A DNA stretch of 41,323 nucleotides from positions 356,994 through 398,316 of the forward strand of contig RQSC01000630.1 in the NCBI GenBank assembly GCA_013416795.1, in the 5' to 3' direction. The notes beneath the pieces were generated by a model that was given only the letters and a program-made list of their open reading frames with translations, was not told the DNA's origin and did not search any database. Positions 2,217 to 25,510 of the stretch are shown here, piece by piece. The stretch is from Prasinococcaceae sp. CCMP 1430 (taxonomy: Eukaryota > Plantae > Prasinodermophyta). Positions within the stretch are counted from its first letter, which is position 1; every line of letters begins with the position of its first letter. The translations under genes and the position numbers were made by a program.

Positions 2217-4370
2217 TCATGCCGCGTCGCTCTCTGGCTCAACCTTGACAGCTTTCCCGCCAGCCGCGGGGTCGTCCGCGTTCGGGACATCGCATGGGCC
2301 GCCGTCTGAAACGTGCTGCTTCTCTCCTGGGTCGTAGCGGTGGAAGAGCAGGTTGGCGACGGTGCGGTCAACGACCTCCCGCAGCACCACCTTGTCCTTC
2401 GGCGTGCCCGCGCCATCAGCGCCACCGCCGGCCGAGGCGTCGGGCGCGCCACCCACGCCGCCCGCCACCGCCGCGCCGTCCGCGCCGCTCGCACCAGCGT
2501 CCTCACTGTTCGACGGATTCGACGCATGCGAACCGTTCCCACCGCTGCCCGCCTGCGCGTCGAGATGCGTGTAGCTCGCGTCCCTGCGGCTGATGTTGGC
2601 AGGCTTGGAAGGCTCACCCCCGTCGGCGTCGCCCTGCAGACCACTGGTCGCGGCGCCAAGCACGGAGCTCGACACTCCGCCCGCGCTGCCGCTGCCCCCA
2701 TCGCTGGGCGGTGTGATGACGCCATCGCGATCTCCGCGCGCGGCAGCGGCCGCGCCGGCGGCACCACTCGCACCGGCCGCAGCGGTCGCAGCGGCTGCAA
2801 CGGCGGGCGCGTCGGTGCCACCTCCGGTGGCCTCAGCGTCGGCTAGCGCCGCCGCGCTCTTGCGCTCCCTGGCCGAAGCCGCCAATCTCAACAGCGATTG
2901 GCGGATGGTCTCCTTGAGGATGGGATCCAAGTTGCTCACGATGGCCTGAAGTTTGCGCACAACGCTCGCCTCCATCGCCAGGACTTCACCCGGCACGGCC
3001 ACATTCAGCGGCGCTGCTTGTGCCCACTGCTGCTGCCCCGGCTCGGGCGCCTGCGCGCTCGTACCCCACTGCGCGCCTGGTCGCCGTTGCGCGTCGGCGC
3101 CCTGCTGCAGCATGTGCGACGGGGCGTCAGCGCTCGACGCACCGGCACCTTGCCGCTGCGCGAGTGCCTGCCCACCCGCAGTGCCATGTCGTATGAGCGC
3201 GGATGCCTGCGTGGCCAGCATGGCCTGCTGCGCGACCGCCTTGGTGATCATCGCCTGGGATATCGCCTGCGCCTGGGCGAGGTCCGTCTTGTTCTTCCCC
3301 GCCGATTTGCCCACGGCGCCGCTCGCATTGGCGCGGCCTGCGTCCCCCGCGGCCGCCACGACGCTCGAGTTGCCGCTCGCGCCAGCCCCCGCGCGGCCAC
3401 TGGTTGCGCGGGCGGCGCGCCGCCGCTGTGTGGCCGCCGCCCGCCGCAATCGCTGCTGCTCCTTCTGTTGCCGCCGCAGCTGGTCGGCGTCCACGCTGGT
3501 CGCGAAGTCGCCACTGCCGCCGCCGCCGCCGCCGCCCCCGCCTCCGCCTCCGCCCGCATAGGGTGCCTGTGGCATGCCGCCCATGGCGTAGCCGCCGCCG
3601 CCGTACGGCGGTGCGGTAGCGCTGGGCATGCCTGGCACGTACACGGGCGGCTGCATCGGCAGCATGCTCTGCGGCGCGCCGTATGGCATAGGCTGCATCT
3701 GCTGCTGCGGCACCGCCATCATGCCGGCGCCAGCGCCGCCGTCAAACGGGCCGAACTGCATGGCGCCCGGCGCCTGCACGGCCGGCTGCGCCCCGTAGGA
3801 GGTCACGTGGTCGAGCGGCATGCCACCTCCGCTGAGGTGGCCCTGGCCCGCCACGCCGCCAATGCTACCGCCCCCGCCCCCGCCACCGGGCAACTGGTCC
3901 AGGTTGGCACTCGATCCGCGCGAGTACATCATGCCGCCCGCGCCGTTCCACACGCCCTGCTGGGCGTAGACGCCCCCCGCGCCGCCCAGCGACTGCTGCT
4001 GCGACTGCTGCTGCTGCTGCTGCTGTCCCTGCTGAAGCAGTGGCTGCTGGAGCGGGTGCGGCTGGGGCGGCGCGCTCTGCAACACCTGGGGAGGCGGGCC
4101 TACGCTGCCCCCGGCGCCGCCATCCATCGCGAAGAGGCTCAGGTGCGAGTTGGAGCGCTTGAAGATGTCCGCGAAGTCGTTGCTGTCACCATGGGCCATG
4201 GCGTCGCCCCACCCGCTAATCCCTCCAAGCGCAAACTGGTCGACGCCGGAAGGGCTGCCCAGGCCCATCATGTCGTCCGTGAACATGGCCGACAAGTTCG
4301 CGTCGCCCGGCCGGCCGCCGCCGGTGCCACTCGCACCGCGGCCGCGGCCGCCGCCGCGGCCGCCACCCAT
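2217..4370 (-). CDS. LNK: LNK-family (night light-inducible and clock-regulated) co-activator-like protein, 717 aa, single exon
   Basis: Gly/Gln/Pro/Ala-rich disordered protein with two conserved blocks: MEASVVRKLQAIVSNLDPILKETIRQSLLRLAASARER and VVDRTVANLLFHRYD. These resemble the plant LNK C-terminal motifs as I recall them (LEATSFRQLQ...LDxRTKLCIRDSLYRLAKSAEQR and PIDRSIAHLLFHRP). Confidence 0.78.
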   Translation of the reverse strand: MGGGRGGGRGRGASGTGGGRPGDANLSAMFTDDMMGLGSPSGVDQFALGGISGWGDAMAHGDSNDFADIFKRSNSHLSLFAMDGGAGGSVGPPPQVLQSAPPQPHPLQQPLLQQGQQQQQQQSQQQSLGGAGGVYAQQGVWNGAGGMMYSRGSSANLDQLPGGGGGGGSIGGVAGQGHLSGGGMPLDHVTSYGAQPAVQAPGAMQFGPFDGGAGAGMMAVPQQQMQPMPYGAPQSMLPMQPPVYVPGMPSATAPPYGGGGYAMGGMPQAPYAGGGGGGGGGGGGGSGDFATSVDADQLRRQQKEQQRLRRAAATQRRRAARATSGRAGAGASGNSSVVAAAGDAGRANASGAVGKSAGKNKTDLAQAQAISQAMITKAVAQQAMLATQASALIRHGTAGGQALAQRQGAGASSADAPSHMLQQGADAQRRPGAQWGTSAQAPEPGQQQWAQAAPLNVAVPGEVLAMEASVVRKLQAIVSNLDPILKETIRQSLLRLAASARERKSAAALADAEATGGGTDAPAVAAAATAAAGASGAAGAAAAARGDRDGVITPPSDGGSGSAGGVSSSVLGAATSGLQGDADGGEPSKPANISRRDASYTHLDAQAGSGGNGSHASNPSNSEDAGASGADGAAVAGGVGGAPDASAGGGADGAGTPKDKVVLREVVDRTVANLLFHRYDPGEKQHVSDGGPCDVPNADDPAAGGKAVKVEPESDAA

Positions 4371-4896
4371 GGCGACTGCCGGTCCCTCCCCCTACGAAGG
4401 GGGGGGGGGTCCTTGCCACTCGCTGCGTACACGCACAGAGGCGCGAGCGCGGAGCGCGAGTCAGCGAATGAAGCGCCACCCACACGCCCGTGCAAGCGCC
4501 AGGGGGCGAGAGGCGCACTGGGACGCGGGCGCAAGGGGGGGCGGGGCGGATACAGGAGGCGCGCCCCTGCCAGATGCGCGCCGGTCGCGCAGTCCCAGCA
4601 AAATGGAGCTTGCCGCGAAGCGGCGCACCGCAGCGAGACCAGAGAGGCCCCACCACCCGGCGCAGTGCGTGCCGTCTCTGCAGCGCACGCAACGAGGCGC
4701 GCGGAGTCGGGCAGAGGTCGTGCGGCAGGGCGGCTTTCACCGCCGCGCTCGCCCGCGCGGAGCTGCCCGCTCCTGCTCGCCCACCCGCCTGCACCCACCA
4801 ACAACGAGCGCCGCGCGCTGCGCCGCGCACAGTGCGGCAGGAAGAAAGACGGGCGGCCCGGGGGGGGGGGCGGGGGCGAGCGGGCGCACGACGGCA

Positions 4897-5811
4897 ATGG
4901 CCGTGGCTGCGGAGGATGCGGTGAAGGCGGGGGCGGCAGCAGCTGAAGAGGCGGAGGCCGAGGGGACCGCGGCGGCGGCGGCGGCACGCGCGCCCGTGGG
5001 AGGCGCCGCAGAGCTTGGACTCGCGCCGGATGGCGATGAGGAGGCCGCGGCAGAGGACGCAGCTGTGGACGTCGTGGTGGAGGAGGCCGGGGGAGCGGCT
5101 GACGCGGCGGCGCAGGCAGCGGCCGAGGCCGCAGCCGAGGCGGCGGCAGCTGCGGCTGCCTATGATGACGACGGCGTCGACGCGTTCCGGGGGCGCCTCG
5201 AGGGCGCCCTGCGGCCAGGCGGCTGGCGTGCAACAGCGCGCGAGGCGCTCGAGCGCGCGTTTGAGACCTATATGTACGTCATCTCGCACGCCGAGGCGGT
5301 CGGCGAGACTGCTGCCGATCGGCTCGAGATAGACGGGGAGCGCCGCGAGCTCGCGGTGCGCCTCGCACGCCTGCTACCGCTCTTCATCATCACACAGACG
5401 CTCGTCGTCTTCTCGATCGTATACGCGCTCCGGGGCTCGCTCAAGCACACGAGCGCGGCCAAGGCACAGCAAGAGACAGATGCGCAGCAGGGGAAGGAGG
5501 AAGAGAACAAGGAACGGATCGTGGCGTCGCCCAGGCCGTCGAGCGCAAAGAAGTCGACGCCCAAAGCGAAATCATCGAGCGCGAAGAAGGCCGCAAAGCG
5601 CCCCGTGCCGGACCTGCCCGGCAGCCTGCACGATGTCCCGGGGTGCGGCGAGAAGACAGCAGAGCGCATCACTAACGGCTGTGGGTGGGAGACGCCTGCT
5701 GACATGGTCGCGTTCTTCCAGGAGAATGGCGAGGACGAGTTCAAGGCGGCGCTCAAGGCGGCGGGCGTGCGGATGCAGTCATCGATCGTGCGGTGGTGCA
5801 AGGAGATGTAG
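4897..5811 (+). CDS. Single-pass membrane protein, 304 aa: acidic Ala/Glu N-terminus, TM helix, Lys/Ser-rich linker, C-terminal HhH/BAF-like domain
   Basis: ATG at 4897 is in frame within ORF 4150..5811 and follows a G-tract. TM candidate LLPLFIITQTLVVFSIVYAL; basic linker SPRPSSAKKSTPKAKSSSAKKAAKR; HhH motif LHDVPGCGEKTAERI; ends ...IVRWCKEM*. TGTAA at 5881-5885. Confidence 0.72.
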   Translation: MAVAAEDAVKAGAAAAEEAEAEGTAAAAAARAPVGGAAELGLAPDGDEEAAAEDAAVDVVVEEAGGAADAAAQAAAEAAAEAAAAAAAYDDDGVDAFRGRLEGALRPGGWRATAREALERAFETYMYVISHAEAVGETAADRLEIDGERRELAVRLARLLPLFIITQTLVVFSIVYALRGSLKHTSAAKAQQETDAQQGKEEENKERIVASPRPSSAKKSTPKAKSSSAKKAAKRPVPDLPGSLHDVPGCGEKTAERITNGCGWETPADMVAFFQENGEDEFKAALKAAGVRMQSSIVRWCKEM

Positions 5812-5830: not shown

Positions 5831-5846
5831 ACACACACACACACAC
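5831..5846. repeat. (AC)8 microsatellite in the 3' UTR
   Basis: Read directly from the sequence. Confidence 0.9.
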
Positions 5847-5880
5847 TAAACATTGACAAACACCAGCGCGGCGGGGGGGG

Positions 5881-5916: not shown

Positions 5917-8376
5917 TCACAGCCACGCGCATGCCTCACGGGCAGCGTCGGCGACCTTGCCGCCGCCGCCACTCGTGAGAGCCTGCAATCGCGGCTTTAT
6001 CTCAGCGAGGGCGGAGGAAGCGGCTGGCACTCTCGCTGCAGCGAGCGTGCCCGCGGCGGCCACTAGGCGGAAGAGCGCCTCATTGTCGTCCTCGGAGACG
6101 AGCAGATCCGCGATGGCCCGGGCTAGGGTGCCTGCAAAGTCGCCGCCGCCGTAGGTGCTATTGCGTGCCTTCAAGAGCGCACAGGCATTCAGCAGAGCCG
6201 CAGCGCGCGCCATGCGAGCGTTTGGCGCCTGCGCCGCGGGCGCACCGCCAATGAGCGCATTCACAAGAGCGCCCGCCCGCGATTCGAGCCAGGTGGGAGC
6301 GGCCACAAAAAGTTCGCATGTGAAGCGCGCCGCCAGCAGTGAAGCGGCTCCACCCCCTGACGCCGCGCGGCGCACCGCCGCGGTGATGGCGTCGGCTGCG
6401 GACGCCTGGAGGAGGCCCTGGGACGCCGCCCCCGCGGGGTTGGCGGCCGCACAGCGAGCCACATCGAGGGCGGGGAAGAGGTTGGCCACGGGCCAACCCG
6501 AGAGCACCTTGGTGAGGGACGCACCCGCATCGACTACGACGCCACCGGGAAGAGCTCGCGCGTTCGCCTCAAAGGCGGCGCGTTCGTCGACGCTCAGGGC
6601 AAACTCTGCGGTGAGAGGGTCCGCCGCGAGCTCTGCATTGAAGGTGTCGAGCTTCGTCAGCAGTGGCTCGACCTTGAGCGGTTGCGGGAAGGCGTGGACT
6701 GGCGCTGAAAGCGGCACGTATGTGCCCTGCGGAGGATCCGAGGGCGAGGGGCCGCCGTAGGCACCGCTGCCGGTGTACGGGTCCACCGATGCGAGCCCGC
6801 CCAGCTGCGCGCCGCCACCGGCGGCAGCGCCGCCCGCCGCGGGGACGTACGCGCCACCGCCAGTGAAGGGGTCATAGACCGTCAGATTTTCGTTGATGGC
6901 CTCGGCCGCCTTGCCGCCTGTGCTGTCGATGAGGAACTTGACAACTTGTTCCCTGTAGCCCGCAGGCAGATCATGCTCTTCGAGCCAGCTCTCGGCGACG
7001 TCGTACGGGTTCTGCCCGATGTTGTACGGCAGCTTGCGCACGGGCGCGCCATCGGCGATGTCCACATCGAAGACGTGGTCGTACTGAACGCCGTTGAGCA
7101 CGTTTCCCTGCCCAGAAATCTCCTGGCCGCCCTCGCCGGGCCCATTCACGACGACACCTATTTTTTCCCAGCCACCCTGCGCGGCTGAGTAGACGTATGC
7201 GACGCCCTTGCCCCCCTCCGCAACCACCGCGACCTCGCCATCCTTCTTGCCCGGCTGGTTGAGTACCGACGCATCGCGCATCGGGGGCATACCAGCTGCG
7301 CCCCCGCCAGCAGCACTCGCCTGCTGGTCACCACCGCCGCCGCTCTTGGCATCGGCAATTTCTTTGCGCCGCTTGGCCACCTTGGCTTCGAACGCCTCGC
7401 GCACGTCGGTGGCGGCTGCGCGCACCTCGTCTGTGGTCCAGACGCGCGCCACACCGTCCGCGCAGCAGCTCACGACGTCCCCGTTCTCGAGCGCCGTGAC
7501 GCCCCACACGCAGCCTGTGTGCTCAATGCTCTGCACGCACTCAGCGCTTGCCACCGACCACACGCGCATGGTGTCGTCCTCCGAGCCCGACGCGAGCAGA
7601 CCATTGGGGAGCGAAGCGACGCCGTAGACGAGCGCGGAGTGACCCACCAGCGTGCGGAGCAGTGCGCCGTCGATCGCCCAAAGCGCGATCGTCATGTCGT
7701 GCGACGCACTCGCGAATCCGGTGCCGGGAAGCTCGCATAGCCCGCGCACCGAGTCGGTGTGGCCTCTGTAGGTGTGAGCGACGGATGCACCGCCCGTGGA
7801 AAAGCCCCAGCGCAGCACCGTGGTGTCGCCGCTCCCAGTGAGCAGCTCACCCGCAGCTGTGAAGCACGTGCAGAGCACAGGTCCTGAGTGAGCGCTGAGC
7901 ACGGCCGCCTCGACTGCTTCGGGGGCGCTGGCGGCCCCGAGGTCCCACACGCGCGCCGTCGAGTCGAGGCATGCCGACGCGATCCGTCCGGACGCCCCGC
8001 ACGCCGCCACGTCGGAAACCTGCTGCGTGTGCCCGCGCAGCGTCGCGGAGGGTGCGCTCTGGTCGCCGGCGTTCGCGCTGTCCCAGAGTTTGATGGTCGC
8101 ATCGCGCGAGCCCGTCACGATCGCGCCCTCGGGAAACGCCTTTGCCGCGCCCGCTGGCAGGTAGGCCACGCAGGTCACGTAGTGCTCGTGGCCCAGCAGC
8201 GATCGCTCCGGCTCGTACTCACCGCTGCCATCCGGCAGCACAGGCGCACGCCACACGATCCCGGTTTTGTCGCGGGACACCGTGACGAGCGCGCTATCAG
8301 GGAGGCGAGCGGCGCTGCGCACGTCCTCGCCATGGCCCGCGAGCTCCTGCCGCAGCACGTGGCCCGCCCCCGCCAT
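5917..8376 (-). CDS. PLAA: Phospholipase A2-activating protein / Doa1-Ufd3 ubiquitin-Cdc48 adaptor (WD40-PFU-PUL), 819 aa, single exon
   Basis: Starts MAGAGHVLRQELAGHGEDVR. Seven-blade WD40 region (GH...SASHDMTIALW, GHSALVYGV, SGSEDDTMRVW). PFU domain YDHVFDVDIADGAPVRKLPYNIGQNPYDVAESWL...YREQVVKFL. C-terminal PUL helices WPVANLFPALDVAR. Confidence 0.95.
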   Translation of the reverse strand: MAGAGHVLRQELAGHGEDVRSAARLPDSALVTVSRDKTGIVWRAPVLPDGSGEYEPERSLLGHEHYVTCVAYLPAGAAKAFPEGAIVTGSRDATIKLWDSANAGDQSAPSATLRGHTQQVSDVAACGASGRIASACLDSTARVWDLGAASAPEAVEAAVLSAHSGPVLCTCFTAAGELLTGSGDTTVLRWGFSTGGASVAHTYRGHTDSVRGLCELPGTGFASASHDMTIALWAIDGALLRTLVGHSALVYGVASLPNGLLASGSEDDTMRVWSVASAECVQSIEHTGCVWGVTALENGDVVSCCADGVARVWTTDEVRAAATDVREAFEAKVAKRRKEIADAKSGGGGDQQASAAGGGAAGMPPMRDASVLNQPGKKDGEVAVVAEGGKGVAYVYSAAQGGWEKIGVVVNGPGEGGQEISGQGNVLNGVQYDHVFDVDIADGAPVRKLPYNIGQNPYDVAESWLEEHDLPAGYREQVVKFLIDSTGGKAAEAINENLTVYDPFTGGGAYVPAAGGAAAGGGAQLGGLASVDPYTGSGAYGGPSPSDPPQGTYVPLSAPVHAFPQPLKVEPLLTKLDTFNAELAADPLTAEFALSVDERAAFEANARALPGGVVVDAGASLTKVLSGWPVANLFPALDVARCAAANPAGAASQGLLQASAADAITAAVRRAASGGGAASLLAARFTCELFVAAPTWLESRAGALVNALIGGAPAAQAPNARMARAAALLNACALLKARNSTYGGGDFAGTLARAIADLLVSEDDNEALFRLVAAAGTLAAARVPAASSALAEIKPRLQALTSGGGGKVADAAREACAWL

Positions 8377-8540
8377 CGCCGTCGCAGCGATGCGATGCGA
8401 TACGGATCTATGCGCGCGCGCGCGCGTGCTTGCGAGCGAGCGGGGCGGGGGGGATGAGGGGGGCAGGGCAAGGGGCGCCTGCGCCTGCGCCCGGCGCGGC
8501 CGGCGCGCGTCCGCGCGCTGGCTCGCACGCACCCCCCCCA

Positions 8541-10589: not shown

Positions 10590-13500
10590 CTAGAAGCCAG
10601 GCAGACACGACAGGTCCAGGACGCCCTTCGGCAGGTCGGCCGCCTCGCGCAGCAGCGCCAGGCGGTTGGCCCTGATGGCCTCGTCCTCAGCCATCACGAA
10701 CACATTCTCAAAGAATGCTGCGGTGGGGGCCACGATCGCCACGGACGCGTCCAGCAGCACATCCACGCGGGCGCCCGACGAGCTCGCGCTGCTGTCTGCC
10801 GCGTCGAGCGCCGCGCGTACCTCGCCCACGGCCGCGTGCAGCGCCCGCTCCTCGTCCGTCTCGAAGAGCGCCGGGTCCACCGCCGCCCCCGCGTCGCCCT
10901 CCTTCCCACGGATGATGCGGGTGGGGCGAGCGTACGCCGCCATGACCTCCTTGAAGCCCTCGCTCTCCACGCGGGCGGCCAGCTGCGCCACCGCCGCGGC
11001 CGCCGCGGCAGGCTGCTCGGACCGCTCCGCAAGCACCGCGCGCACGCTCTCGATAGGATTGCCAGAGTCGACCAGCAGCTGCTCCAGCCGACGCGCGACG
11101 AACGTCAGCGCGCTGTCGATCGCCTCCTCGCTCACCTCGACCGGCTGCGAGGCCGCAGCGAGAGCGCAGCCTTCGCGCAGGTCCAGCGGCACGTCAGCAG
11201 CAATGGCCGTCTGCACGAGGCCGTACGCGATGCGGCGCAGCGCGAAGGGGTCGGCCGTCGCCGACGGCGCGCCAACCACGGAGATGAGCCCCACCAGCGA
11301 GTCAAGGCGGTCCGCGAGAGCGAGCGAGACGCCCGCTGGCGAAGAAGCCACCTCGTCACCCGAATTGCGCGGCAGCACCGCCTCGAACGTCGCCCGCGCG
11401 ACCGCCTCCGACGCTCCTGACGCCGCGGCGTAGTATCGGCCCATGACGCCGGCGAGGCTGGTGAACTCCATCACCATTGAGGTGGCAAGATCGGCGTTGG
11501 CGAGCGGCGCGGCCTCGGCAGCGAGCGCGGAGTCGTCCGCGCTCAACTTGAGCGCGGCGCACAGCTGCGGCACCACGCCCTCCACGCGCTTGCTCTTGTC
11601 GAGCATGGACCCCAGCTTCTTCTGGAATGTGATGCCCTCAAGACCAGCGCGGAACTCAACCAGCGGCTTCTTGAGGTCGGCCTCGTAGAAGAAGCGCGCG
11701 TCTGCGTACCGCGCGCGAAGCACGGCCTCGTTGCCCTTGCGCACGACGTCCTCGTCGCACGCGCCGTTGGCCACCGTGACGAAGTACGGCAGCAGCTTGC
11801 CTGTGGCGGGGTCCTCCACGGGAAAGTAGCGCTGGTGCTTGCGCATCACCGTCACCAGCACCTCGCGCGGGAGGGCGAGGTACTCGTCCTCATACGAGCC
11901 AAGAAGCGGCGACGGCGACTCAATCAGGTTCGTCACCTCGTCAAGCAGGCCCTCGTCGTCAGGCACTGCCCCGCCCACGCCTTCGGCGAGCGCCTGCGCG
12001 GCAGCCTTGACGGTCGCGCGGCGTTCACCGGCATCGGGCATCACACCAGCCGCGGCGACGGTCTCCAGGTACGCTTCGGCGCTCGGCACCGACACGGCGG
12101 GCTCCTCGCCGAAGTCATTGCGCACCGCACGGCTCCCACGGCCGCTCACCACGCCCACCGCCTCGAACGGGATCTCGGCGTCGCCGTGCAGCGCCACGAG
12201 CCAACGCAACGGGCGCGAGTACGCAGCCGTCGAGCCTTCCCACTTCATCGTCTTGGGGTACGACAGCCCGCCCACCACGCCAGGCAGCGCCTCGGCGAGC
12301 ACCTCGCCAGCCGCGCGGCCAATGTCCTTGACCTCTGCGTACACGTACTCCACGCCCTTGTCATCCGCACGGCGCACCAGCTGGTCAGGGCTCACGCCAT
12401 TCTTACGGCAGAAGCCCTCAGCGGCCTTGGTGGGGTTACCATCGGCATCGAAGGCGGCCTTCACAGGCGGCCCGCGCATGGTGCGGGACTCGTCCGCCTG
12501 CGTTGACGCGAGGCCCTCGACGACCGCCCACAGCCTGCGCGGCGTGCCCGAGACCGTGACCTCGCCATGCGACAGGCGCAGCTCCTCGAGCATGGTGGGA
12601 AGCGCCTTCTCCAGCTGGGCAATGCCTGAGGCCACGTCCTGAGCTGGAAGCTCCTCGGAGCCGACCTCGAGCACGAAAGTGCGCGGGGCGTCGGGCAGCG
12701 CCGCGGTGTCCACGGAGGGTGCCACCGGCACCGGCGCGCTCTCGTGCACCCCAAGCGGATACTCGAGCTCATCGCGCCGCTCGACCCACAGCTTGGCGGA
12801 GTCGCGCGCGAGCGCGCGCATGCGCCCGAAGTACACGGCGCGCTCCGTGACGCCCACAGCGCCGCGCGCGTCCAGCACGTTGAAGGCATGGCTCGTCTTG
12901 AGGACATTATCGTACGCCGGGACCGGCAGGCGCTTCTCGAGCATGTCCTTGGCGGCGGTCTCGTACGCGTCGAAGCGCGTCTTGAGGTTGTCCACGTCGG
13001 CCTCGTCCATGTTATACACGGACTGCTCGTACTCGTTCTGCATGAAGAGCTCGCCGTAAGTGATGTCGTCGGTGTACCTGATGTCCTTGAAGTGGTCGAC
13101 GTCCTGCAGCGCCATGAGGATGCGCTCGAGGCCGTAGGTGATTTCGACGCTCACCGGGCTCAGCGGGAGCGAGCCGCACTGCTGGAAGTAGGTGAATTGC
13201 GTCACCTCCATGCCGTCCATCCACACCTCCCAGCCGAGCCCCCACGCGCCGAGCACCGGGCTCTCCCAGTTGTCCTCAACGAAGCGCACGTCGTGCGCGC
13301 CGATGTCGATGCCGAGCGCGCGCAGCGAGCCGAGGTAGAGCTCCTGCGTGTTGCCGGGCTCGGGCTTGAGGATGACCTGGAACTGCGTGTGGCGCTGCAC
13401 GCGGTTTGGGTTGTCGCCGTAGCGCGAATCGTCCGGGCGCACGGACGGCTCTGCGTACGCCACGCGCCACGGCTCCGGGCCGAGCACGCGCAGGAACGTG

Positions 13501-13663
13501 CCCGGGTTCATCGTGCCCGCGCCGACCTCGGTGTTGTGCGGCAGCCACATGGTGCAGCCCACGCTGGCCCAGTACGCCTGCAGGCGCTGGATGGCCTCCT
13601 GGAACGAGGGCACCGGAGGCAGCGGCGCGTCGCGCGCCGCGGCCGCTGCGTCTGATGCTGCCG
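10590..13663 (-). CDS. glyQS: Organellar glycine--tRNA ligase, bacterial type with fused alpha and beta subunits (GlyRS-2/EDD1-like); transit-peptide exon(s) upstream unresolved
   Basis: Alpha part: [92 protein letters not shown]. Beta part: [55 protein letters not shown]. Likely acceptor (TTCGCAG on -) ends at 13664. Confidence 0.96.
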
Positions 13664-14288
13664 CTGCGAAGCAGAAAAGCCCTGTGGCCCCTCCGGCGCC
13701 CGCGCGCCGCACGCGCGCCGCACGCCGCACGCAAACCCCGCAGGTGCGCCACACACGCGCGCGCGCGCGCATGCACACGCACACACACAAACTCTCATCA
13801 CACCTCCATCTTCAGTCAGGTGCAGGCGCGCAGCATCCAGAACCACAACACAACTGATCAAACCGACACCAAACAACAAACGACACATGCGCCTGAATTC
13901 CATCCGCGCCTCGCCGACCCACCAACCAACTACGTACAGTAAGCGGCCCAGCACGATCGATACCCCGGTCCGGGCCTGCACCAGCCAGCCGGAGGCCCGG
14001 CCTTCTCCAGCGCATGCCGGCCGGAGGACGGACGATGTGGCCGAACGCCAGCCGCGGAAAGGAAGAGGAGGAAGAAGAGACGGCATCCAGCCAGGCTCCA
14101 TCAATTGTTCCAACCAACCAACGCTCGCGCGGTCTCGTTCCCGTTCCGTCGCGTCTTCTGTCTGCGGATGGATCCATCGCGGGGCGAATCGCCCGCAGGG
14201 GCCGCGCGGCGCCGCTGCGGAGCCGTCCCAGCCAGACATCCCGCGGCGGCGGGTGCGCGCGCGGGCCGCGACGGGCGAGGGAGGGAGG

Positions 14289-15698: not shown

Positions 15699-16352
15699 TC
15701 ACTGGTCCTTCTTGCCCTCGGTCTTCTTGGGCGCCGGGACGTGCTTCATTCGCGCATCGTGCTTCTCGACCAGCGCCATGATGACAAAGACGATCTGCAT
15801 GAAGATCACGGCCAGCACCGCGCCAAGAGCCTTGCTCGTGTACCTGTTCTCGATGCCACAGATACGCCCGATGAAGTCGGTGATTTCGGCCCCGGTCTCC
15901 GTGTACAGGACCCACGTGGGGGCCACCCACATAAGCACGGACACGCCCATGAACTTCTGCATCGCCGCCTTGCCTTGCGCCTGCGTGGCATGCGCAACGC
16001 GTGCAGGTATCGCACACGCCGTGCGTCAGCGCGTCAGGGTGGTGCGCATCGCATGCGCAGCATACCGCGCGAGCAGCGACCTGCGGCGCCGCGCGACAAG
16101 GAGGCGCGCAGTCTGCACAATTCGCTCTTGATCCCACGCCGCCTGCAGCTCCGGCGCGGCGCCTCAGCACGGCGCGGGGGTTCTTGCTTAGCGGCAGCGG
16201 CGACTGCCGCGCGCCGCGTCGCCGCCGCGCACGCACCGCACCACCGCCCGTGTCGGCCGCGAGCGTACTTCAGATGCGTGAGCAACGAAGATGTGGCGCC
16301 CGCCGCGGCGAGCTCCGCCCGCCCTCCCCTCGGCTCGCACCGGGCGGGCCAT
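15699..16352 (-). CDS. VMA21: VMA21-like V-ATPase assembly factor (two TM helices, C-terminal di-lysine ER-retrieval motif), about 121 aa
   Basis: Exon 15980-15699 encodes AQGKAAMQKFMGVSVLMWVAPTWVLY...KALGAVLAVIFMQIVFVIMALVEK...TEGKKDQ*. Acceptor at 15981, with CTGAC about 45 nt upstream. Proposed first exon 16352-16269 (donor GTACGC, phase 0) is less certain. Confidence 0.6.
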
Positions 16353-16626
16353 GCTGCGCGCAGGCGCACCGCCCCCAAAACTCTCGCGGCCCGGCTTCGA
16401 GCGAACCCTCTTCACGGGGTTTGTACCGCAAATGCGACCCGAAAATGGCTCTCGTCTCCGACCGACAGACTGCGGGAGCGCCTCGCACCGCAGTGGCCTG
16501 CGGCTGTTTCCATTTCGAGTGCTGCGCGCCCCCGCGCGAGCAGAGGGGGGGGTGGGGGGGGAGGGCACAGTGCGCGCGAGCCGCGGCGGGGGCGCCCCCC
16601 TCTTGGGAGGGGGGGTGGGAGGCGCG

Positions 16627-19600
16627 ATGATCAAGCACGGCGTCGTGTCGCTGCGCGAGGAGACGAAGAGAAAGGGCGCCTTTAAGACCCGCATGCTCGC
16701 CCTCGCCTTGGGCGGGTCGGCGGCCCGCGAAAAAGGCGTGTTCGCGCACCTCTGCGCGTTCGACAAGCCGCCGAAGGATGGGAGGACGCTTGACATGTCC
16801 GCGGCGGCTGCGAGCGTCGACGTTACGGCGCGGTTCGAGGCCATCGGCGAGGTGAAGCATCCTGACAAGCATGGGGTGACCGTGCGCAGCCCCGAGACGG
16901 GGCAGAAGTTCACGCTGAGATGCCGGGACGACGCGGAGCGCGACGCATGGCTGGCCGCATTCGCGAAGGTCATACGCGCCGCCGACCGCCAGGCGCAAAC
17001 ACACGCTGCAGCTGGAGACGGTCCTGCGTCGCCTCGTGGCTCAGAGGGGAGTGCTGCTGCCAGTGCGAGCGACAAGCATGTGGCCGGACACAAGAGCTCC
17101 GCAAAGGGCGCTGGCGGCAGTGGTGGCAGAGCGCGCGTGTTCGGTGCGCCGCTTATAGCCGCGCACGAGCAGGCGGTAGCGGGCAAGAGCTGGCTGGTGG
17201 CCGCTTTCGATGCACTGCGCTCGCATGGTGGTATTGATGCGGAAGGCATCTTCCGCGTCTCAGCTGCCGCGCCAAAGCTGAAGGCCGTCCTGCAGCAGTA
17301 CCAGGACAATTTCCCGGCCGCTATGCCCGGCGCAGCTGACGACCCGATCGTGCTGGCCGACGGCATCAAGTACTTCCTGCGCGCGCTCAAGGACGCACCT
17401 GTGAGCGAGGCGGACCGCAAAGCGCTCATGGACACTCACCGACAGCTCAAGGCTGCCGGCGTTGGAATCGAGATGGCTACATACATGCGCGAGGGGCCCA
17501 TTGCAGCCTTGCGTGCTCCTAGCATGTGGATCGTCTCGGAGCTGAGCATGTTTCTGTGGGAGGTCGCTTCGAGGCAAGAACACAACAAGATGGACGCCAA
17601 GGCACTCGCGGCATGCCTGGGACCGCTCTTGCTTCGTCCTCCAAAGACGCTTGACATCGACGCTGATGCCTCGCAGGAAGAAATCATGCGTGTGGCAATC
17701 GCAGACCGTGACGGGGGCAACGACGTGCTTCACGTGCTCATTGAGTACGCGCCTGATATTTTTGTCTCCCAAGAGGACATGGACAGGAGGCTAGAGGACC
17801 AGGCGCAGGTCGATCAGCAGCGGCGCGAGCAGGCCGAGCGCGAGCGCGAACGAGCGCAACAGCTTGAGCAGCAGCAGCAGCAGCAGCAGCAGGCCGAGCG
17901 CGAGCAAGCCCAATTCAAACCGGAGGAACAGCAGGGGCTTGGCGATGGTGGAGAGGTTGAATCGTCGGAGAAAGAGCCTCTCGTGGCTGCTGGGGCGCCA
18001 ACTGCTCCTTCTCCCGAGCGACGTGCGCTCGAATCACAAGCTCGCGCTCTGAGCGAAGAAATAGAGTCTGTCAGCTCAAAGCGCGCCACAATCGCCGCGC
18101 AGCTGCAGGCAGCGGGGGGCGTACTGGACACCGCCAAAGAACGCGAAGCGGTGGAGCAGGCACGAGGGCGCGTCACCGAGCTTCAAAAAAAGCTGGCAGA
18201 CGAGCGCGCAGCAGCAGAGGAGCTTGCCACCGCGCAAGGAGACCTTGCCTCTGCTCATGAGCAGGTGAGCGCACTGCGCGCGGAGCGTGAAGCGCTCGAT
18301 CAAAAAGTCGAGGCGTGCGAAGCAGAGCTCAAGTCTCTCGCGGCTGCCGCAGCCCAATCGGCAGAGAGAGCTGAGGTGGCACGTGCGGAGATTGCAGCAG
18401 CAGAAGCAGAGCTCGAGGAGGCAAGGGCGCGCGCGTCGAGCGCGGAGGTCGCATTAGAGAACGCACGCGCCACTCATAGTGGACCCGACAGTATCAACAG
18501 CACACGCCTCACGGCCCTCCGGGAGCAGATCTCTGAGCAGGTGGCCTTGGAGCAGCGGTACACAAGCGAAGCAGAGCAGGCTCGGGCGGGTGCGGCCGCG
18601 GCAGGCGCTGCCGCTGCTGCTGTGGACTTGCTGCGTGCCGACCTGGCATCAGCTGAGCGCTCCGCATCGGCCGCGAGGAAGGCCGCCGAAGAGGCTGAGG
18701 CGGCGCTGTCGGACGATGCAGCTGCCGTCGAGGACGCGAGCGCTGAGCGTGAAGTCGTGAAGGAGGAGCTCGAGGCTGCGAAGCGTACCTTAGCCGAGGC
18801 CGAGGCGGCGCGATCAAAGGCTGCCGCGGCACGCGTGCGCGCCGCTGCCGAAATGCGCTCGCTCGAGGGCGAGATTGAGGCCTTGCGCGCAGAGGTCAAG
18901 TCTGTCGCAACATCTTCCGTCAAGGCTGCCGAGGATCGTGCCAACGAAGAGGATAGCGCGATCGCACGCGCGGCAGAGGCGCGAGCTGAGCGCGATGCTC
19001 TGCGCGAAAAACTGAACGCCGCACGCGCAGCCGCCACGGAGAGTGCTGAAAGCGCCGGGGCTGTCGCCGCTGCTGCACAGCGCGAGTGCGGTGAGCTGCG
19101 CGCGGAATGTGAGTCCATGCAGGGCGAGATCGACGCTGTTAAGAGACAGCTGGCAGCGACGGAGGGGGACGAGGGCGTTACTTCGCTACTCGCGGAGCGC
19201 AACCTGCTCTTTGCCGAAACCTCGAAGGTTCGCGCCGCGCTCGACGCTGCTCGTGTGAAGCTCGCTGAGCGTGAGTCGGCGAGGGAGCGCCACGTGGCAG
19301 AGGTGCGAGCACGTGCGGACGCACAAAGCAAGGAGCTCGAGGAAAAGCGCGAAGAGCTCGCCAAGCTCGAGGTGTCCCTCGCAGAATCAGAGAGTCAGGT
19401 ACGTGGCGCGCATAAATTGAGTGACGCGCGCATGCGCGCGTGCCTGCGCCAACTCATGCTGACAGAAGTACGTCCTCAGCCACGTGAAATCACGTGTCCA
19501 GGCTGCGCCAGCTACTGATGAGGGCGCTTTGCTAGGGAAGGAGCTCTCCGCTATCGCGCCGCTCATCGATGCAGCGTCTTCGCGCGCTGCAGCTGCAGTG

Positions 19601-20230: not shown

Positions 20231-20831
20231 GTGGGGCGCCGTGCTCACGTGGGACGCTCCCGCCCGAATCTAGCAACGAATGCACTCCCACTGCCATGCG
20301 TGATACCACCGTCTGTAGCAGAAATTCGTACAGTCATTCCAGCAGCACGCCCGCGTCGCGGCGGCCGCGGCGGCCTCATCGTCCCACTCGGTCGGCCCAG
20401 CGCCGCTTTGCTCCCTGGCGTTCTCGCGCGGCGCGTCCCTGGTACACTGCCCGGTGCTGTTGGTAGACCCGCACGAACATGCGCTCGCGCTCCGTGCGGC
20501 CCCCCGCGCCTGCGCCCGCCTCGACGGGCGGCCTGCCGAGGGCGGCCGGCGAAGCTCCGCGCTTCCCGCGCCCTTTCGTGCGCGTTCCCCTTTGAATCTC
20601 ACTCCTGTCGGTGAAGTTTGATGTGAGCAGTCCCTCGGAAGGTGCACTGACCTTTCGCGAAGGCGGATGGGATGCAGATCAACAGAGCCGCGCGCGGGAA
20701 AGGGCCCATCCAAAACACAAAGCGCGCGCGGGTGGGCGGCGCGACACAACACGCACGTCGCGCAGCAGCGCGCCCGCGCGCGCCGGGCCGCGAGGCCGGT
20801 GGGGCGCGCCCTCCGCCCGGGGAGGGGGGAG

Positions 20832-22478
20832 ATGGCGGACCCGGTGGAGGTGGTCCTTCTCACGTCGTCCGACGACGAAGAGGGTGGCGATGGCGGCGGC
20901 GGCGGGGGCGGCGGCGTGGGCGCACCGCGCACCGGCTCTGCGGCGGTTCCGCGATCGGGCGCTCCTCAGCCGGCGCGGCCGCGGTCTGTGGGCGCTCGCT
21001 CGCCCTCTCCCCCGCCAATGCCCTCGACCTCGGGCCGCGCCGCCTCCCCTCTCGAGCAGTTGGCTGCGGGGAGTGGTCGCTCTCCCACCGCGCGCCCGCG
21101 CGGCAGCAGACGGCCAGTGTTCACGTTCACCGACAGCGGTGACGACGAGGTCGACGCTCTGCTAGGGGCGACGGCGAGGCGGGGGGAGCAGCTGCGGCAA
21201 CAACGGGCACAGGCGCAGAAGCGGCCACGAGCAGTGGCTGGCGCCCCCATAAGACCATCGCGGTCGGACGACGATGAAGCGGAGCCGCAACATCTGCCGC
21301 CGCAGAATGACCACTCGCAGCCGCCGATGCAGCAGCAGAGTCAACGGCAGAGGCAGCAAGCGCTGCGGGTGGCGGAGCGCGAGCGGAAGAAGGCGGAGAA
21401 GGATGCTGAGAAGGAACGCCGCCGGCGGAGCAAGGAGATGCATCAGCACGAGTCTGGCACCAAGTCTTCCGAGGAGATCGAGCTCGTCATCGACTCGACT
21501 TTGGCGGTCACGCGCGAGGGCGCGGCCATCGTGACCCGCATGGCCGATAAGAAGTTGCGGGTGACAAATGAGTCACTGGCCGTGCCGGGGGCGGTGGTAT
21601 GGCGGCGGCGCTTCCGCCTGTACGCCGGCGATCAACTGCCGCAGGCCCATTCGCAGGCTGCCACCGACAGCCAGTCACAGCTGCCAAACTCAGAGAGCCA
21701 GTCGGAGAAGCGTCTCGCGTCGAGCAAGTACGACTTCGAGGAGCGCACCGAGCAGTGCGCGGCACTCTTGCTCGTGCTGCCGCCCGAAGAGTTCGCGCTC
21801 GCCTTGCAGGACGGCAAGCTCGCCGCGCTCGCGCGCGAAAAGCTTGCCGCGAGCGGCTGCCCGCGCGGGAGCACCGCGCACGTGGTGACACACAGCCTGG
21901 AGCCGCTGCTGCGGCAGAACGAGCAGGCGCGCTGGCGGGCGTCGACGACTGGCGCAAGACAGCCCACACAGCGCCTGCCCGATCGCGCAAGTGTGGTAGA
22001 GCATATTGCACGCGAGCATGTGCGATGCCCGGCGCTCAGCGTGCGCATGTGCCGCGACCAAACCGAGGTCGGCGAGTACGCTGAGGTGCTCACGCTCGCA
22101 CTCGCGCGCAAGCCCTTCGAGTCCGAGGCGGGCTACTTCGAGGTGTTCGCCAACAAGGCCAAGGCCAAGTCAAAGACTAGGGACACGGGCAGCCAGTCGC
22201 TCGCGCAGGATGATGCGCCGCCGTCGATGTTTACCGACGCCGTCGCGAGCGTGTCTGGCGTGGGCGCCGAGTACGCACGCGCTATCGGAAATCTGTACCC
22301 ATCCTTCCGAGCTCTACGGGACGCGTACGGTCGGCAAGGCCAGGCCGCCACGTCGGAGATCAACCCAGCAAAGGATCTGGCGAGCGGCATGGGACCCAAC
22401 AGGCGATTCGGCACCGAGAGGTCGGGCAAGCTCATGCGGCTGCTGTGCTCTGACGATCCAGATGCGTCGTTTGCGTAG
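20832..22478 (+). CDS. EME1: Crossover-junction endonuclease subunit EME1-like (MUS81 partner), 548 aa
   Basis: Starts MADPVEVVLLTSSDDEE. Disordered N-terminus, K/E/R-rich helix, then an ERCC4-like block (IELVIDSTL...VPGAVVWRRR...LLVLPPEEF...EYAEVLTLALARKPF). C-terminal HhH2 (AVASVSGVGAEYARAIGNLYPSFRALRDAY...RRFGTERSGKLMRLL) matches the plant EME1 layout. Confidence 0.8.
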   Translation: MADPVEVVLLTSSDDEEGGDGGGGGGGGVGAPRTGSAAVPRSGAPQPARPRSVGARSPSPPPMPSTSGRAASPLEQLAAGSGRSPTARPRGSRRPVFTFTDSGDDEVDALLGATARRGEQLRQQRAQAQKRPRAVAGAPIRPSRSDDDEAEPQHLPPQNDHSQPPMQQQSQRQRQQALRVAERERKKAEKDAEKERRRRSKEMHQHESGTKSSEEIELVIDSTLAVTREGAAIVTRMADKKLRVTNESLAVPGAVVWRRRFRLYAGDQLPQAHSQAATDSQSQLPNSESQSEKRLASSKYDFEERTEQCAALLLVLPPEEFALALQDGKLAALAREKLAASGCPRGSTAHVVTHSLEPLLRQNEQARWRASTTGARQPTQRLPDRASVVEHIAREHVRCPALSVRMCRDQTEVGEYAEVLTLALARKPFESEAGYFEVFANKAKAKSKTRDTGSQSLAQDDAPPSMFTDAVASVSGVGAEYARAIGNLYPSFRALRDAYGRQGQAATSEINPAKDLASGMGPNRRFGTERSGKLMRLLCSDDPDASFA

Positions 22479-22726: not shown

Positions 22727-25510
22727 TCACATCACCCGCTCGGTGGTTACGAGCTGCTGCTGGCCTGACCTAGCAGCGTCTTCTGGTTGGCGCATGACCA
22801 TCCCAAGATCGCCCTTTTTGCCCGAGGCCGGCCTGTGAGTGGCCGTCAGATCGGCGTAAGTGGCAAGCCCCGCTTCTCCATCGCCTGTGCGAATTGCCGC
22901 GCGCGCTTCCTGTCTGGCCTCTCTGCCAGAAGTAGAGATGAATCCCCGCAAGCTTGGGCCAGCGACTCCCGCAGGTGCCTTCGCGTCGGCCGTTTGCTTC
23001 GAAAGAGTCGTAATCTTCGCAGTGGTCCGCGGCCTCGGAGTCGGCTCCTGTTCAGAAAGCGGTTTTGCGCCGCGCTCCACCGCGGCGTCGACATCCACCG
23101 GGTCCCTGGCCTGCCCAGCAGTGCCGCCCACCTCCATGCCCGCGCTCTCCGTGGCGCTGCTGACCGCGACACTTGCCGAGACAGAGGACGCCCTCGCTGT
23201 GTTCCCCCCAAGGTCCGGGGGCTCGACAACGATGGTCTCATTTTTGGAGGCACCCCGCGTAGGTTCGACCAGCCTGGTGCCAGCACCACCAGCCGCGTCA
23301 TCGGCGTTTGCGGACGTCGCAGCGTCAGCCTCTGGCACTTCGCCAGCCTCGCGCGCGTCCGCACCCAGTTGCACCGCAGTGTTACCGAGCGGCAACTTCG
23401 TGCCTCGATCGCGATCGTCATCCACACTCTCAGTGCCCACCGAATCCGAGCCGGCTGCAGTCACGTTGAGGGCGCCGGTCGCGCTCGAAGCACCATTACC
23501 GACGCTGCGTGCAGTCACGACTGCTTCGGCTGCCCTTGCCGTGCCGATTTCAGTACTGGCGACACCTTTCGCGCCTTCCTCTGCATCTCCAAAGGCGCCT
23601 TTCGACGCGTCCAGCGAATCGGCAACCGCCTCGTGCGTATCGTCTTGTGCACTCGCGCCAATGGCTAGCCCACTCGTGCTGCTACTGTTCAAGGGCACCG
23701 ACGAAGCCACCTTGGCCTTGGCCTTGGCCTTGGCCTTGACCTTGGCCTTGGCCTGGTCAGGCTTCCCTTGGGCGTCCTCGATCACGGCTTTGCTGCCGAC
23801 CACGGCTTTGCTGCTATTTGAACCAGCGGACACCTGGATCTCGTCTGCGGTGGCATTCCCTAGCTGGTCCGAGGAGGGGACGTTCGCCTTGAAGTAGGCA
23901 CGCACGTCGGCGCCTGTCGCGCGCAAAGTGGCATCGTCGCTGCCCTCTGCTGGCAAGATTGCGTTAGCTCTGCCTGTGCCCATATCCGCAAGACTGCCTG
24001 CGGCGCTCGCGATACCCGTGTTTGTGCCTGTGCTTGTGCCCGTGCTTGTGCCCACCCTGGTGCCTCTCGAGTCCGCAGTCGCGTCTGCGCTCTTTGTGTG
24101 AGAGGTGATGAGGCCAATGGATGATGCGTTCCCGCGCAGGCGGTCCTCACCAGGACCGTTTGTTGCATTTGTTGCTGGTGCGCGTGATGCTCCCACAGAC
24201 AGAAACGCTTCGGCGCTCTTCGCAGCCCCGAGCTCTGCGGCCCTAAACCTCGCTTTCGCCGAGGCCGCGGTCTCATCTGTGTCCTTCGCCTTCCCATCAC
24301 CAGTTGCGTGCACCTCGTCCTCCAGGGCAGCAGCTGACGACGTGATTTCCTCGCCTTTGTGGCTCTCGCCCTCATCGGCGTCGTCCTCACCCTCCCCTGT
24401 TTTGCCTTCGCCCGCACCAGCGCCGTCCGCGAGCGCAGCCTGCACGCCAGCAGCTTCAACATCCTGCGATTGTTCGCTCGCGTCGCTGACCAGGGCATCG
24501 CCACCCGACGCGATGTGCTCTGACTCTGACAGCTCGAAAGCAGGGTCACTCAGCGCCTGCTCGGAACCCCCCACCACTTTGTCTGGCTGCTCGTCGTGAG
24601 CTACGCCCGTGCCGACAGGAGCTGTCGCGCCTAAGACCGCGTGGTCTTCGAAAGATGACGACGTGATGGCCTTTGTGCTCTCAGCAGTCCTGTCGGTGGG
24701 GTTGAAGGCCCCGCCTCCCCGGCTGCCGTCGTGATCCGCGCCGGCAGATGCGAGGCCGGCGCTCTCAACTGATGGCGGCAGCTCTAGCGAGTGATCTACT
24801 CCATGCACTCGCTCCAATGGCTTTTCTTCGTCCCGCGCGCCCTGGAAATCGGCGGCACGCGTGCTGTCGCCGCCCAGCTCTACCTCGCTCAGTATGGCTG
24901 CCTCAGCAGATGCGACTTCCGCGGCGTCCTGGCGGTAGGCGGATGGGTCATGATCCGCCACCTGGGCAGAATGCTGGAGGCCAATGAGTCCAGAGCGCAA
25001 ATCTTCAAAAGATGCGTCGACCGAGGCCCTCGCGCGGGCGGGCGCTGGTTGTCGCGCGAGGACCGCGGCGGCATCCGCCAGCGTGGCCTGTTCAGCGTGG
25101 GCGTCACTGCGGCCGCTGAGACCGGCCGAGCCGGTGCGGTGCCTGGAGAGGTCGATACTGGGTGCTCGCGTGGTGGCCTGGCCGGACAGGCCGAAGCGTA
25201 ACACGGCAATGAGGCCCACCAGCCCGAGCGCCGCAAGCAAGCGCACAGCGGCGCGCCTACGCGCGTTCTTCTTGGGTACGCTCGTGCTGCCAAAGCCGCC
25301 GCGGAAGCTTCCGCCGCCAGAGATCGTTGGCGAGATCAAGGTCGCAGGCGACTGCAAGCTACGACCGCCGCGGCCTCGCTCCGCCGCCGCCCGCGCCTTG
25401 GTCCCCGGCGTCCAGTCGTCCCAGGCCTCCTCGTCGCTGCCGCTGCCCCAGTCATTGCCACGCTGCGCATCGCCGCGCGCCGGGGTGCCCGTGGTCGTGG
25501 GCGTGCGCAT
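22727..25510 (-). CDS. Hypothetical type II membrane protein with a long Ala/Ser/Gly/Asp/Thr low-complexity ectodomain, 927 aa
   Basis: Long uninterrupted ORF. A cytosolic N-terminus of about 85 aa ends in KKNARRR, followed by the TM segment AAVRLLAALGLVGLIAVLRFGL. (CCTTGG)n at about 23710-23751 encodes AKAKVKAKAKAKAK. No catalytic domain recognised. Confidence 0.6.
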   Translation of the reverse strand: MRTPTTTGTPARGDAQRGNDWGSGSDEEAWDDWTPGTKARAAAERGRGGRSLQSPATLISPTISGGGSFRGGFGSTSVPKKNARRRAAVRLLAALGLVGLIAVLRFGLSGQATTRAPSIDLSRHRTGSAGLSGRSDAHAEQATLADAAAVLARQPAPARARASVDASFEDLRSGLIGLQHSAQVADHDPSAYRQDAAEVASAEAAILSEVELGGDSTRAADFQGARDEEKPLERVHGVDHSLELPPSVESAGLASAGADHDGSRGGGAFNPTDRTAESTKAITSSSFEDHAVLGATAPVGTGVAHDEQPDKVVGGSEQALSDPAFELSESEHIASGGDALVSDASEQSQDVEAAGVQAALADGAGAGEGKTGEGEDDADEGESHKGEEITSSAAALEDEVHATGDGKAKDTDETAASAKARFRAAELGAAKSAEAFLSVGASRAPATNATNGPGEDRLRGNASSIGLITSHTKSADATADSRGTRVGTSTGTSTGTNTGIASAAGSLADMGTGRANAILPAEGSDDATLRATGADVRAYFKANVPSSDQLGNATADEIQVSAGSNSSKAVVGSKAVIEDAQGKPDQAKAKVKAKAKAKAKVASSVPLNSSSTSGLAIGASAQDDTHEAVADSLDASKGAFGDAEEGAKGVASTEIGTARAAEAVVTARSVGNGASSATGALNVTAAGSDSVGTESVDDDRDRGTKLPLGNTAVQLGADAREAGEVPEADAATSANADDAAGGAGTRLVEPTRGASKNETIVVEPPDLGGNTARASSVSASVAVSSATESAGMEVGGTAGQARDPVDVDAAVERGAKPLSEQEPTPRPRTTAKITTLSKQTADAKAPAGVAGPSLRGFISTSGREARQEARAAIRTGDGEAGLATYADLTATHRPASGKKGDLGMVMRQPEDAARSGQQQLVTTERVM

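Follow-up and report, generated by a model that had tools for sequence, protein, structure and literature searches.

Barrier-to-autointegration factor (BAF/BANF1; Pfam PF02961; PDB 1CI4, 6GHD, 7ABM, 9J8M) is an ~89-amino acid soluble protein that binds LEM domains and lamin; it is an obligate homodimer, in which form it bridges two DNA duplexes, and its fold is a compact five-helix bundle with one helix-hairpin-helix (HhH) and one pseudo-HhH. LEM and HeH proteins (emerin, LAP2, MAN1, Lem2, and yeast Src1/Heh1-Heh2) are integral to the inner nuclear membrane and hold chromatin at the nuclear envelope by a small helical module that binds DNA or BAF, with a basic stretch resembling a nuclear localization signal (NLS) and a disordered linker between the module and the membrane; yeast Heh1 and Heh2 reach the inner nuclear membrane by means of their NLS and disordered linker. 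Bacterial ComEA, a membrane-anchored HhH receptor that captures external DNA, joins a membrane anchor, a flexible linker, and a ~65-amino acid HhH DNA-binding domain. BAF is a conserved metazoan protein, and its LEM-linked tethering role is likely restricted to Metazoa (PMC3198171, PMC5630835). Little is understood of the ways in which organisms other than animals and fungi keep chromatin at the envelope. Here we describe a gene at positions 4897-5811 (+ strand) of a 41,323-nucleotide stretch of contig RQSC01000630.1 (hereafter, the window) from Prasinococcaceae sp. CCMP 1430, a member of the Prasinodermophyta, which form the deepest branch of the green plants (PMC7455551). The gene encodes a single-pass membrane protein of 304 amino acids with a C-terminal domain predicted to be BAF-shaped, and we put at ~40% the probability that the protein is a direct DNA-to-membrane tether, likely at the nuclear envelope, that acts through this HhH domain, the role that we favor.

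The C-terminal domain (residues 241-304, 5617-5808) was modeled with AlphaFold2 from the single sequence, i.e. with no alignment supplied, using the isolated last 70 residues of the protein and, in a separate run, the full-length protein. The best model of the isolated domain had a mean predicted local distance difference test score (pLDDT) of 83.7, and the full-length run gave the domain the same helices at a pLDDT of 91-95. The predicted structure consists of a short turn at residues 244-246 followed by helices at 252-262, 267-277, 279-288, and 294-303. The canonical HhH motif LHDVPGCGEKTAERI (residues 244-258, 5626-5670), in which G249 and G251 are the hairpin glycines, places the PGCGE segment on the turn preceding helix 252-262. 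The initial annotation of this locus had proposed an HhH fold for a terminal domain of ~65 residues; the C-terminal sequence is as it was quoted there, and the HhH fold is predicted by both AlphaFold2 runs and agrees with the canonical motif.

The initial annotation had further likened the domain to BAF and suggested a Foldseek comparison of the last 70 residues. In this comparison, BAF chains filled the top seven PDB ranks with TM-scores of 0.72-0.74 and probabilities of 0.98-0.99, and all other chains fell below a TM-score of 0.45; the E-values of the BAF matches were only 0.17-0.35, which is expected because the domain is so small. BAF chains again took the top seven places when the full-length model was the query. 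An exhaustive VIA comparison against 48,161 representative chains placed BAF first as well (9j8m_K; Z 8.5, root mean square deviation 2.1 Å over 66 of 70 residues), followed by Rev1 at Z 6.9 and then by a plateau of SAM and HhH domains at ~5.4. When VIA was applied to the list of Foldseek matches, four BAF crystal chains scored Z 8.6-8.8 and the nuclear magnetic resonance chain 7.8, with RadA next at 5.7. Across these superpositions, BAF residues 13-84 overlay 66 of the 70 domain residues at 2.0-2.1 Å. The leading match in an ESM Atlas shape search was likewise a SAM_BAF cluster (TM-score 0.73, 1.9 Å), the HhH modules of RecG and RadA reaching 0.54-0.63, and two SAM_BAF clusters headed a language-model feature search of the domain at 0.90, a result of lead-only grade; genuine BAF as the query has the same second-tier neighbors as the domain (Cdd1, HHH_5, TfoX_C, and DUF4332). 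A viral structure library yielded nothing clear. Taken together, these comparisons make BAF the single best structural match of the predicted domain by a clear margin, and they do so consistently and specifically, with models predicted from a single sequence as the queries.

Beyond the predicted fold, the domain is like BAF in its similar size and slightly acidic character (net charge -3), and its hairpin glycines G249 and G251 fall at the place of BAF G25 and G27, a pairing that comes from the ranges of the superposition and from a profile alignment that is not itself significant (see below). Positions 6, 25, 27, and 46 of BAF are critical for DNA binding (PMC2173821). The glycines at 25 and 27 touch the DNA backbone. 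As BAF residue 13 is the first to be superposed, the algal domain lacks the N-terminal piece of BAF that carries K6 and also the regulatory sites Thr3/Ser4. In all, neither the first 12 nor the last 5 residues of BAF have a counterpart in the domain, and a basic Ser/Pro/Lys linker precedes it where BAF has its N-terminal segment. The setting differs too, in that BAF is a free-standing soluble dimer whereas the algal domain is the tail of a 304-residue protein with one transmembrane helix, and the host is a green alga whereas BAF is treated as a metazoan protein (PMC3198171, PMC5630835).

Judged by its sequence, the protein is a species-level orphan. Pfam SAM_BAF (PF02961) gave no match at E-values up to 10 with either the whole protein or the 70-residue domain, nor did any LEM, HeH, or MSC domain at the same threshold; HHH_3/ComEA was also unmatched in Pfam, NCBIfam profiles returned nothing meaningful for the protein, and a phmmer search against PDB sequences returned noise and no BAF. 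Residues 150-304 retrieved only their own cluster in a word-index search, in which the 70-residue domain retrieved nothing. An exhaustive phmmer search of 1.84 billion representatives with the domain recovered the protein itself and three bacterial repeat proteins (E 1e-5 to 7e-5); we rejected the latter as spurious, as their matching regions are multi-copy 'NTPAEAVAYAQANGQG'-type repeats and not HhH domains. A scan of JGI metagenomes produced 600 pattern matches, none of which was confirmed, and an ESM Atlas feature search with the whole protein gave no usable match, its 'recognition' value being 2160 compared with the 2300 reached by 91 of 100 known-family proteins. Because these searches found no relatives, conservation is known within one species only and the AlphaFold2 models have no alignment behind them.

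For a direct comparison with the BAF family, a human BAF query (100% identical to the UniRef human BAF) was used to collect 941 family members, from which an alignment of 25 members was taken; the resulting profile is mostly vertebrate, with an effective sequence number (Neff) of 1.5. BLASTP of the domain against BAF found nothing at E-values up to 100, hhalign against the 25-sequence alignment gave a non-significant probability of 0.35 (E 0.17), and hmmsearch --max with the BAF hidden Markov model (HMM) scored 0.0 bits, a value equaled or exceeded by 232 of 2000 shuffled sequences. The initial annotation had aligned the domain with BAF residue by residue by eye, and that alignment has no statistical support by any of these methods. 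The register that hhalign selects is the same one, pairing PGCGE with BAF AGIGE (G25/G27) and GEDEFKAALKA with DEDLFREWLKD, and it carries no statistical weight. The accompanying claim that the terminal WC corresponds to the WC of BAF is at odds with the structural superposition, whose last paired positions are model residue 70 and BAF residue 84. Thus, of the proposal of a BAF-like terminal domain, the part that stands is the predicted fold with BAF as its best structural match, and the part that does not is homology at the level of sequence. The predicted domain is BAF-shaped, and membership in the BAF family is not demonstrated.

The sequence signals that were obtained point to HhH domains in general. 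All centered on LHDVPGCGEKTAERI, matches to HHH_5 (PF14520; E 0.01; 16.8 bits, gathering threshold 27), HHH (PF00633; 12.7 bits, gathering threshold 24), HHH_8, and RecR_HhH spanned E-values of 0.01-0.12. These signals, together with a BAF profile at chance level, would fit a generic HhH or SAM-like domain (of the Cdd1, TfoX_C, DUF4332, RadA N-terminal, or Pol X superfold) whose likeness to BAF reflects convergence or a bias of AlphaFold2 when given a single sequence. The domain shares the LxxVPGxGxKTAxxI motif and the helical hairpin with HHH_5, HHH, RecR_HhH, the RadA/Rad51 N-terminal domain, and Cdd1/TfoX_C. In the feature search, the HHH_5, Cdd1, and DUF4332 clusters lay just under SAM_BAF at 0.85-0.88, and RecG, RadA, Rev1, and SAM domains reached TM-scores of 0.54-0.63 and Z of 5-7 in the structural comparisons. 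However, all of the generic Pfam matches remain below their curated cut-offs, and the generic HhH folds are weaker structural matches than BAF (RadA at Z 5.7 or less, TM-scores of 0.54-0.63). In Z, BAF leads all other folds by 1.6 to 3 units, with 66 of 70 residues at 2.0 Å, and it is also first in Foldseek with each model and in the ESM Atlas shape search. We regard a generic HhH domain as the most serious of the alternatives, somewhat less likely than the tether reading; nucleic-acid binding at a membrane would be expected of such a domain too, and its biology need not resemble that of BAF or of the nuclear envelope. That the domain is instead a true, very diverged BAF homologue, with a BAF fold predating animals and a one-chain tether of chromatin to the nuclear envelope in an early-branching green alga, appears to us less likely again.

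The tether reading depends on how the protein sits in the membrane. Its transmembrane helix (residues 157-178, 5365-5430) has the core LLPLFIITQTLVVFSIVYAL (residues 159-178), the sole strongly hydrophobic segment of the protein (Kyte-Doolittle average 2.11 across 19 residues), which is bracketed by R158 and R179 and lies within a long AlphaFold2 helix (148-208). On its C-terminal side is the basic Ser/Pro/Lys linker (residues 179-240, 5431-5616), which contains 14 Lys/Arg residues and a net charge of +7 over residues 180-240, along with SP/TP sites in the segments SPRP and TPKAK; it is predicted to be helical to approximately residue 208 and then disordered, with a pLDDT below 50 over residues 214-235. 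Within this linker, KK-X10-KKAAKR (residues 218-235, 5548-5601), read from the translation, fits the classical bipartite NLS pattern. On the N-terminal side, an acidic, low-complexity head rich in Ala and Glu (residues 1-92, 4897-5172) has no family match and is modeled as long helices of low confidence (pLDDT ~50-66); residues 1-100 contain 23 Asp/Glu and 4 Lys/Arg, for a net charge of -19. It is joined to the membrane by a helical juxtamembrane region (residues 95-155, 5179-5361; AlphaFold2 helices at 91-104 and 109-142, pLDDT 57-84), which matched no Pfam family and no known fold. The layout in the initial annotation, with an acidic Ala/Glu N-terminus, one transmembrane helix of ~20 residues, and a basic linker bearing SP/TP sites, was thus borne out by composition and hydropathy.

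The charge-difference and positive-inside rules are established guides to the orientation of transmembrane helices. The 15-residue flanks of the helix carry a net charge of 0 on the N-terminal side and +2 on the C-terminal side, and the head and linker carry about -21 and +7, respectively, so the charges of flanks, head, and linker favor a C-terminus on the cytosolic or nucleoplasmic side. On these sequence features, we consider this orientation of the C-terminal half to be probable without being secure. The reverse arrangement, with a cytosolic N-terminus and the linker and domain in the lumen or outside the cell, would leave the domain never meeting chromatin and would make it a ComEA-like DNA- or protein-binding module or a SAM-like interaction module. 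The 156-residue N-terminal part is long to be translocated without a signal peptide, basic residues flank the helix on both sides (R149, R150, R155, and R158 compared with R179, K183, and K189), and ComEA has the same order of transmembrane helix, linker, and ~65-residue HhH domain. Nevertheless, a linker with 14 Lys/Arg residues directly after the helix would be hard to translocate, the head is strongly acidic, and KK-X10-KKAAKR would be useless in a lumen. HHH_3/ComEA also lacks a Pfam match, and no ComEA occurs among the 50 best structural matches; the algal gene differs from ComEA further in being eukaryotic and nuclear, in its long acidic head before the anchor, and in its likely opposite topology. 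We accordingly hold the reverse topology to be improbable. The acidic N-terminus shows no signal-peptide or organelle-presequence character, and since there is no presequence free of acidic residues and the region upstream of the gene is non-coding (see below), the evidence is against import into an organelle. A role as a plastid or mitochondrial nucleoid anchor was rejected on the grounds of the missing presequence and acidic N-terminus.

In the proposed tether, the transmembrane helix would act as an internal signal anchor that sends the very acidic head to the lumenal side and leaves the basic linker and C-terminal domain in the cytosol or nucleoplasm. By the bipartite NLS-like motif of its linker, the protein would then reach the inner nuclear membrane; it is from KK-X10-KKAAKR that we infer a nuclear-envelope location. 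At that membrane, the G249-x-G251 hairpin of the BAF-shaped HhH domain would bind the DNA backbone irrespective of sequence, and the histone-H1-like basic linker would reinforce this binding, so that chromatin is pinned straight to the membrane with no LEM-type adaptor. DNA binding is suggested by the canonical HhH motif with its two hairpin glycines, and the mechanism would not necessarily require a dimer. The SP/TP sites of the linker could free the DNA at division. With the LEM and HeH proteins, the algal protein would share the proposed job of holding chromatin at the envelope by a small helical module, as well as a basic stretch that resembles an NLS and a disordered linker between module and membrane. 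In contrast with these proteins, it has no detected LEM, HeH, or MSC domain, so the likeness is functional and architectural only; its module is BAF-shaped and would merge adaptor and anchor, and it has one transmembrane helix.

Several observations weigh against this reading. Of the five models computed for the isolated domain, all but the best reached a pLDDT of only 60-68, and when a domain is small and helical, a Z of 8-9 lies in the range of common arrangements and is not decisive. The domain lacks the first 12 residues of BAF, among them K6 and Thr3/Ser4, and is net acidic. Pfam, BLASTP, hhalign, and HMM comparison all find no sequence homology to BAF, and the 1.84 billion representatives, the word index, and the JGI metagenomes yielded no relatives. 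Lastly, the charge difference between the membrane flanks is small, which makes the reverse topology possible.

The gene itself is a single-exon coding sequence of 304 codons plus a stop (4897-5811, +), exactly at the coordinates of the initial annotation. Its ATG at 4897 has an A at -3 and a G at +4. The window has a G+C content of ~68% throughout; the published genome of Prasinoderma coloniale has 69.8% (PMC7455551). Because long chance open reading frames (ORFs) occur on every strand of a GC-rich genome, codon usage was scored as a test for a gene, using log-odds with seven confident ORFs of the window as the reference. In each of four parts, the ORF scored between +0.39 and +0.58 per codon when read in frame and below zero otherwise, comparable to the 0.28-0.54 per codon of the PLAA-like, glycyl-tRNA synthetase, and RhoGAP genes of the window. 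The 520 bases upstream (4375-4896) and 105 bases downstream were negative in the frame of the ORF, with none of the six frames gene-like, such that codon usage becomes gene-like exactly at ATG 4897 and negative past 5811. Given this non-coding signal upstream, the in-frame ATGs at 4468 and 4603 are not coding; a start at either of them, which would add an Arg-rich extension resembling a transit peptide, was rejected on the same ground.

RNA-library contigs provide further evidence for the gene. Contigs of one marine metatranscriptome span 5265-5518 and 5500-5746, and two sequencing runs of the organism, probably transcriptomes, gave contigs over 5304-5807 and 5320-5739, all without a joint; together they are colinear over 5265-5807, which is no proof of a full-length transcript. 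Because these contigs are free of joints, the transmembrane segment and the terminal domain lie on one unspliced stretch in these libraries, which speaks against the possibility raised in the initial annotation that the transmembrane segment is spliced out. The gene is probably transcribed. It is also present at 99% identity in a Tara Oceans marine metagenome contig, which encodes the sole database twin of the protein.

We compared natural variants among the window, the Tara contig, and the metatranscriptome. Within codons 240-304, all four distinct variants are synonymous (codons 240, 244, 255, and 299), and one more synonymous variant is found at codon 142. The three nonsynonymous variants fall in the low-complexity head (G65E) and the linker (Q191R and D195A). 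This pattern fits purifying selection on the C-terminal domain, although the numbers are small.

These data bear on whether the locus could be a recently arisen orphan gene, weakly transcribed and functioning barely or not at all, its tidy fold being that of an idealized helical sequence. The protein has no homologue outside the species in the word index, the 1.84 billion representatives, or the JGI metagenomes, one third of it is Ala/Glu low complexity, and its whole-protein 'recognition' of 2160 is below 2300. A gene of this kind would not be expected to match the codon usage of the housekeeping genes of the window, to confine its nonsynonymous variants to head and linker with four of four synonymous in codons 240-304, to carry a canonical HhH motif, or to have a domain modeled at a pLDDT of 91-95. 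We consider this the least likely of the alternatives, and we conclude that a real nuclear gene, restricted to its lineage, encodes a single-pass membrane protein at 4897-5811.

Just 5' of the start codon, a poly-G run occupies positions 4856-4880. The organism's own contigs break at this run, and the Tara scaffold cannot be aligned to the window upstream of it. The run is probably a weak point of assembly or sequencing, and it may be a promoter element prone to forming G-quadruplexes. The part of the Tara contig that fails to align is not used here as evidence on the start codon, as an assembly join at the poly-G run is possible. Farther upstream, the non-coding stretch 4460-4745 between two divergent genes is spanned by a contig from a run that is probably a transcriptome, and it could be the 5' untranslated region of one gene or the other; should it be that of the gene at 4897-5811, the leader would hold upstream ATGs at 4468, 4574, and 4603. 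On the other side, a (CA)n microsatellite (5833-5848) directly follows the stop codon in the ~105-base gap to the stop of the convergent gene (5917-8532, - strand), and the 3' ends of the two genes must nearly touch or overlap.

This convergent neighbor is one uninterrupted ORF for an 871-amino acid protein with WD40, PFU, and PUL domains, a ubiquitin-binding Cdc48 cofactor of the PLAA/Doa1/Ufd3 type. It is followed at 10590-13790 (-) by a fused bacterial-type glycyl-tRNA synthetase with alpha and beta parts in one 1066-amino acid ORF (PF02091 and PF02092), which is the organelle-type enzyme known from plants. A 1075-amino acid ORF at 16291-19518 (+) contains a RhoGAP domain (PF00620, E 1.7e-16), its remainder being without a family match. 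The ORFs at 2217-4370 (-), 20667-22478 (+), and 22727-25510 (-), of 717, 603, and 927 amino acids, have no Pfam match at E <=1e-5; the 717-residue product is rich in Gly, Gln, and Ala.

The initial annotation had held the combination of a transmembrane helix with a BAF-like domain to be undescribed, and a full-text literature search of a limited collection likewise found neither a membrane-anchored BAF-fold protein nor a green-algal BAF. The modeled protein may thus be new, as a tether of chromatin to a membrane, or an HhH protein that binds DNA, of undescribed architecture. Its weight is limited because it is a single-species orphan and because everything past the fold prediction is inference. 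Should the likeness to BAF be merely convergent, the protein would still be a clean candidate case of a eukaryotic membrane-anchored HhH DNA binder. If the domain were a true BAF homologue, it would point to an independent or ancestral way of attaching chromatin to the nuclear envelope, in a group not known to have canonical LEM proteins or lamins. If the tether reading is true, the BAF adaptor and the LEM-protein anchor can fuse into one chain, and the Prasinodermophyta would provide a candidate plant-lineage tether in which a BAF-shaped domain is anchored directly in the membrane.

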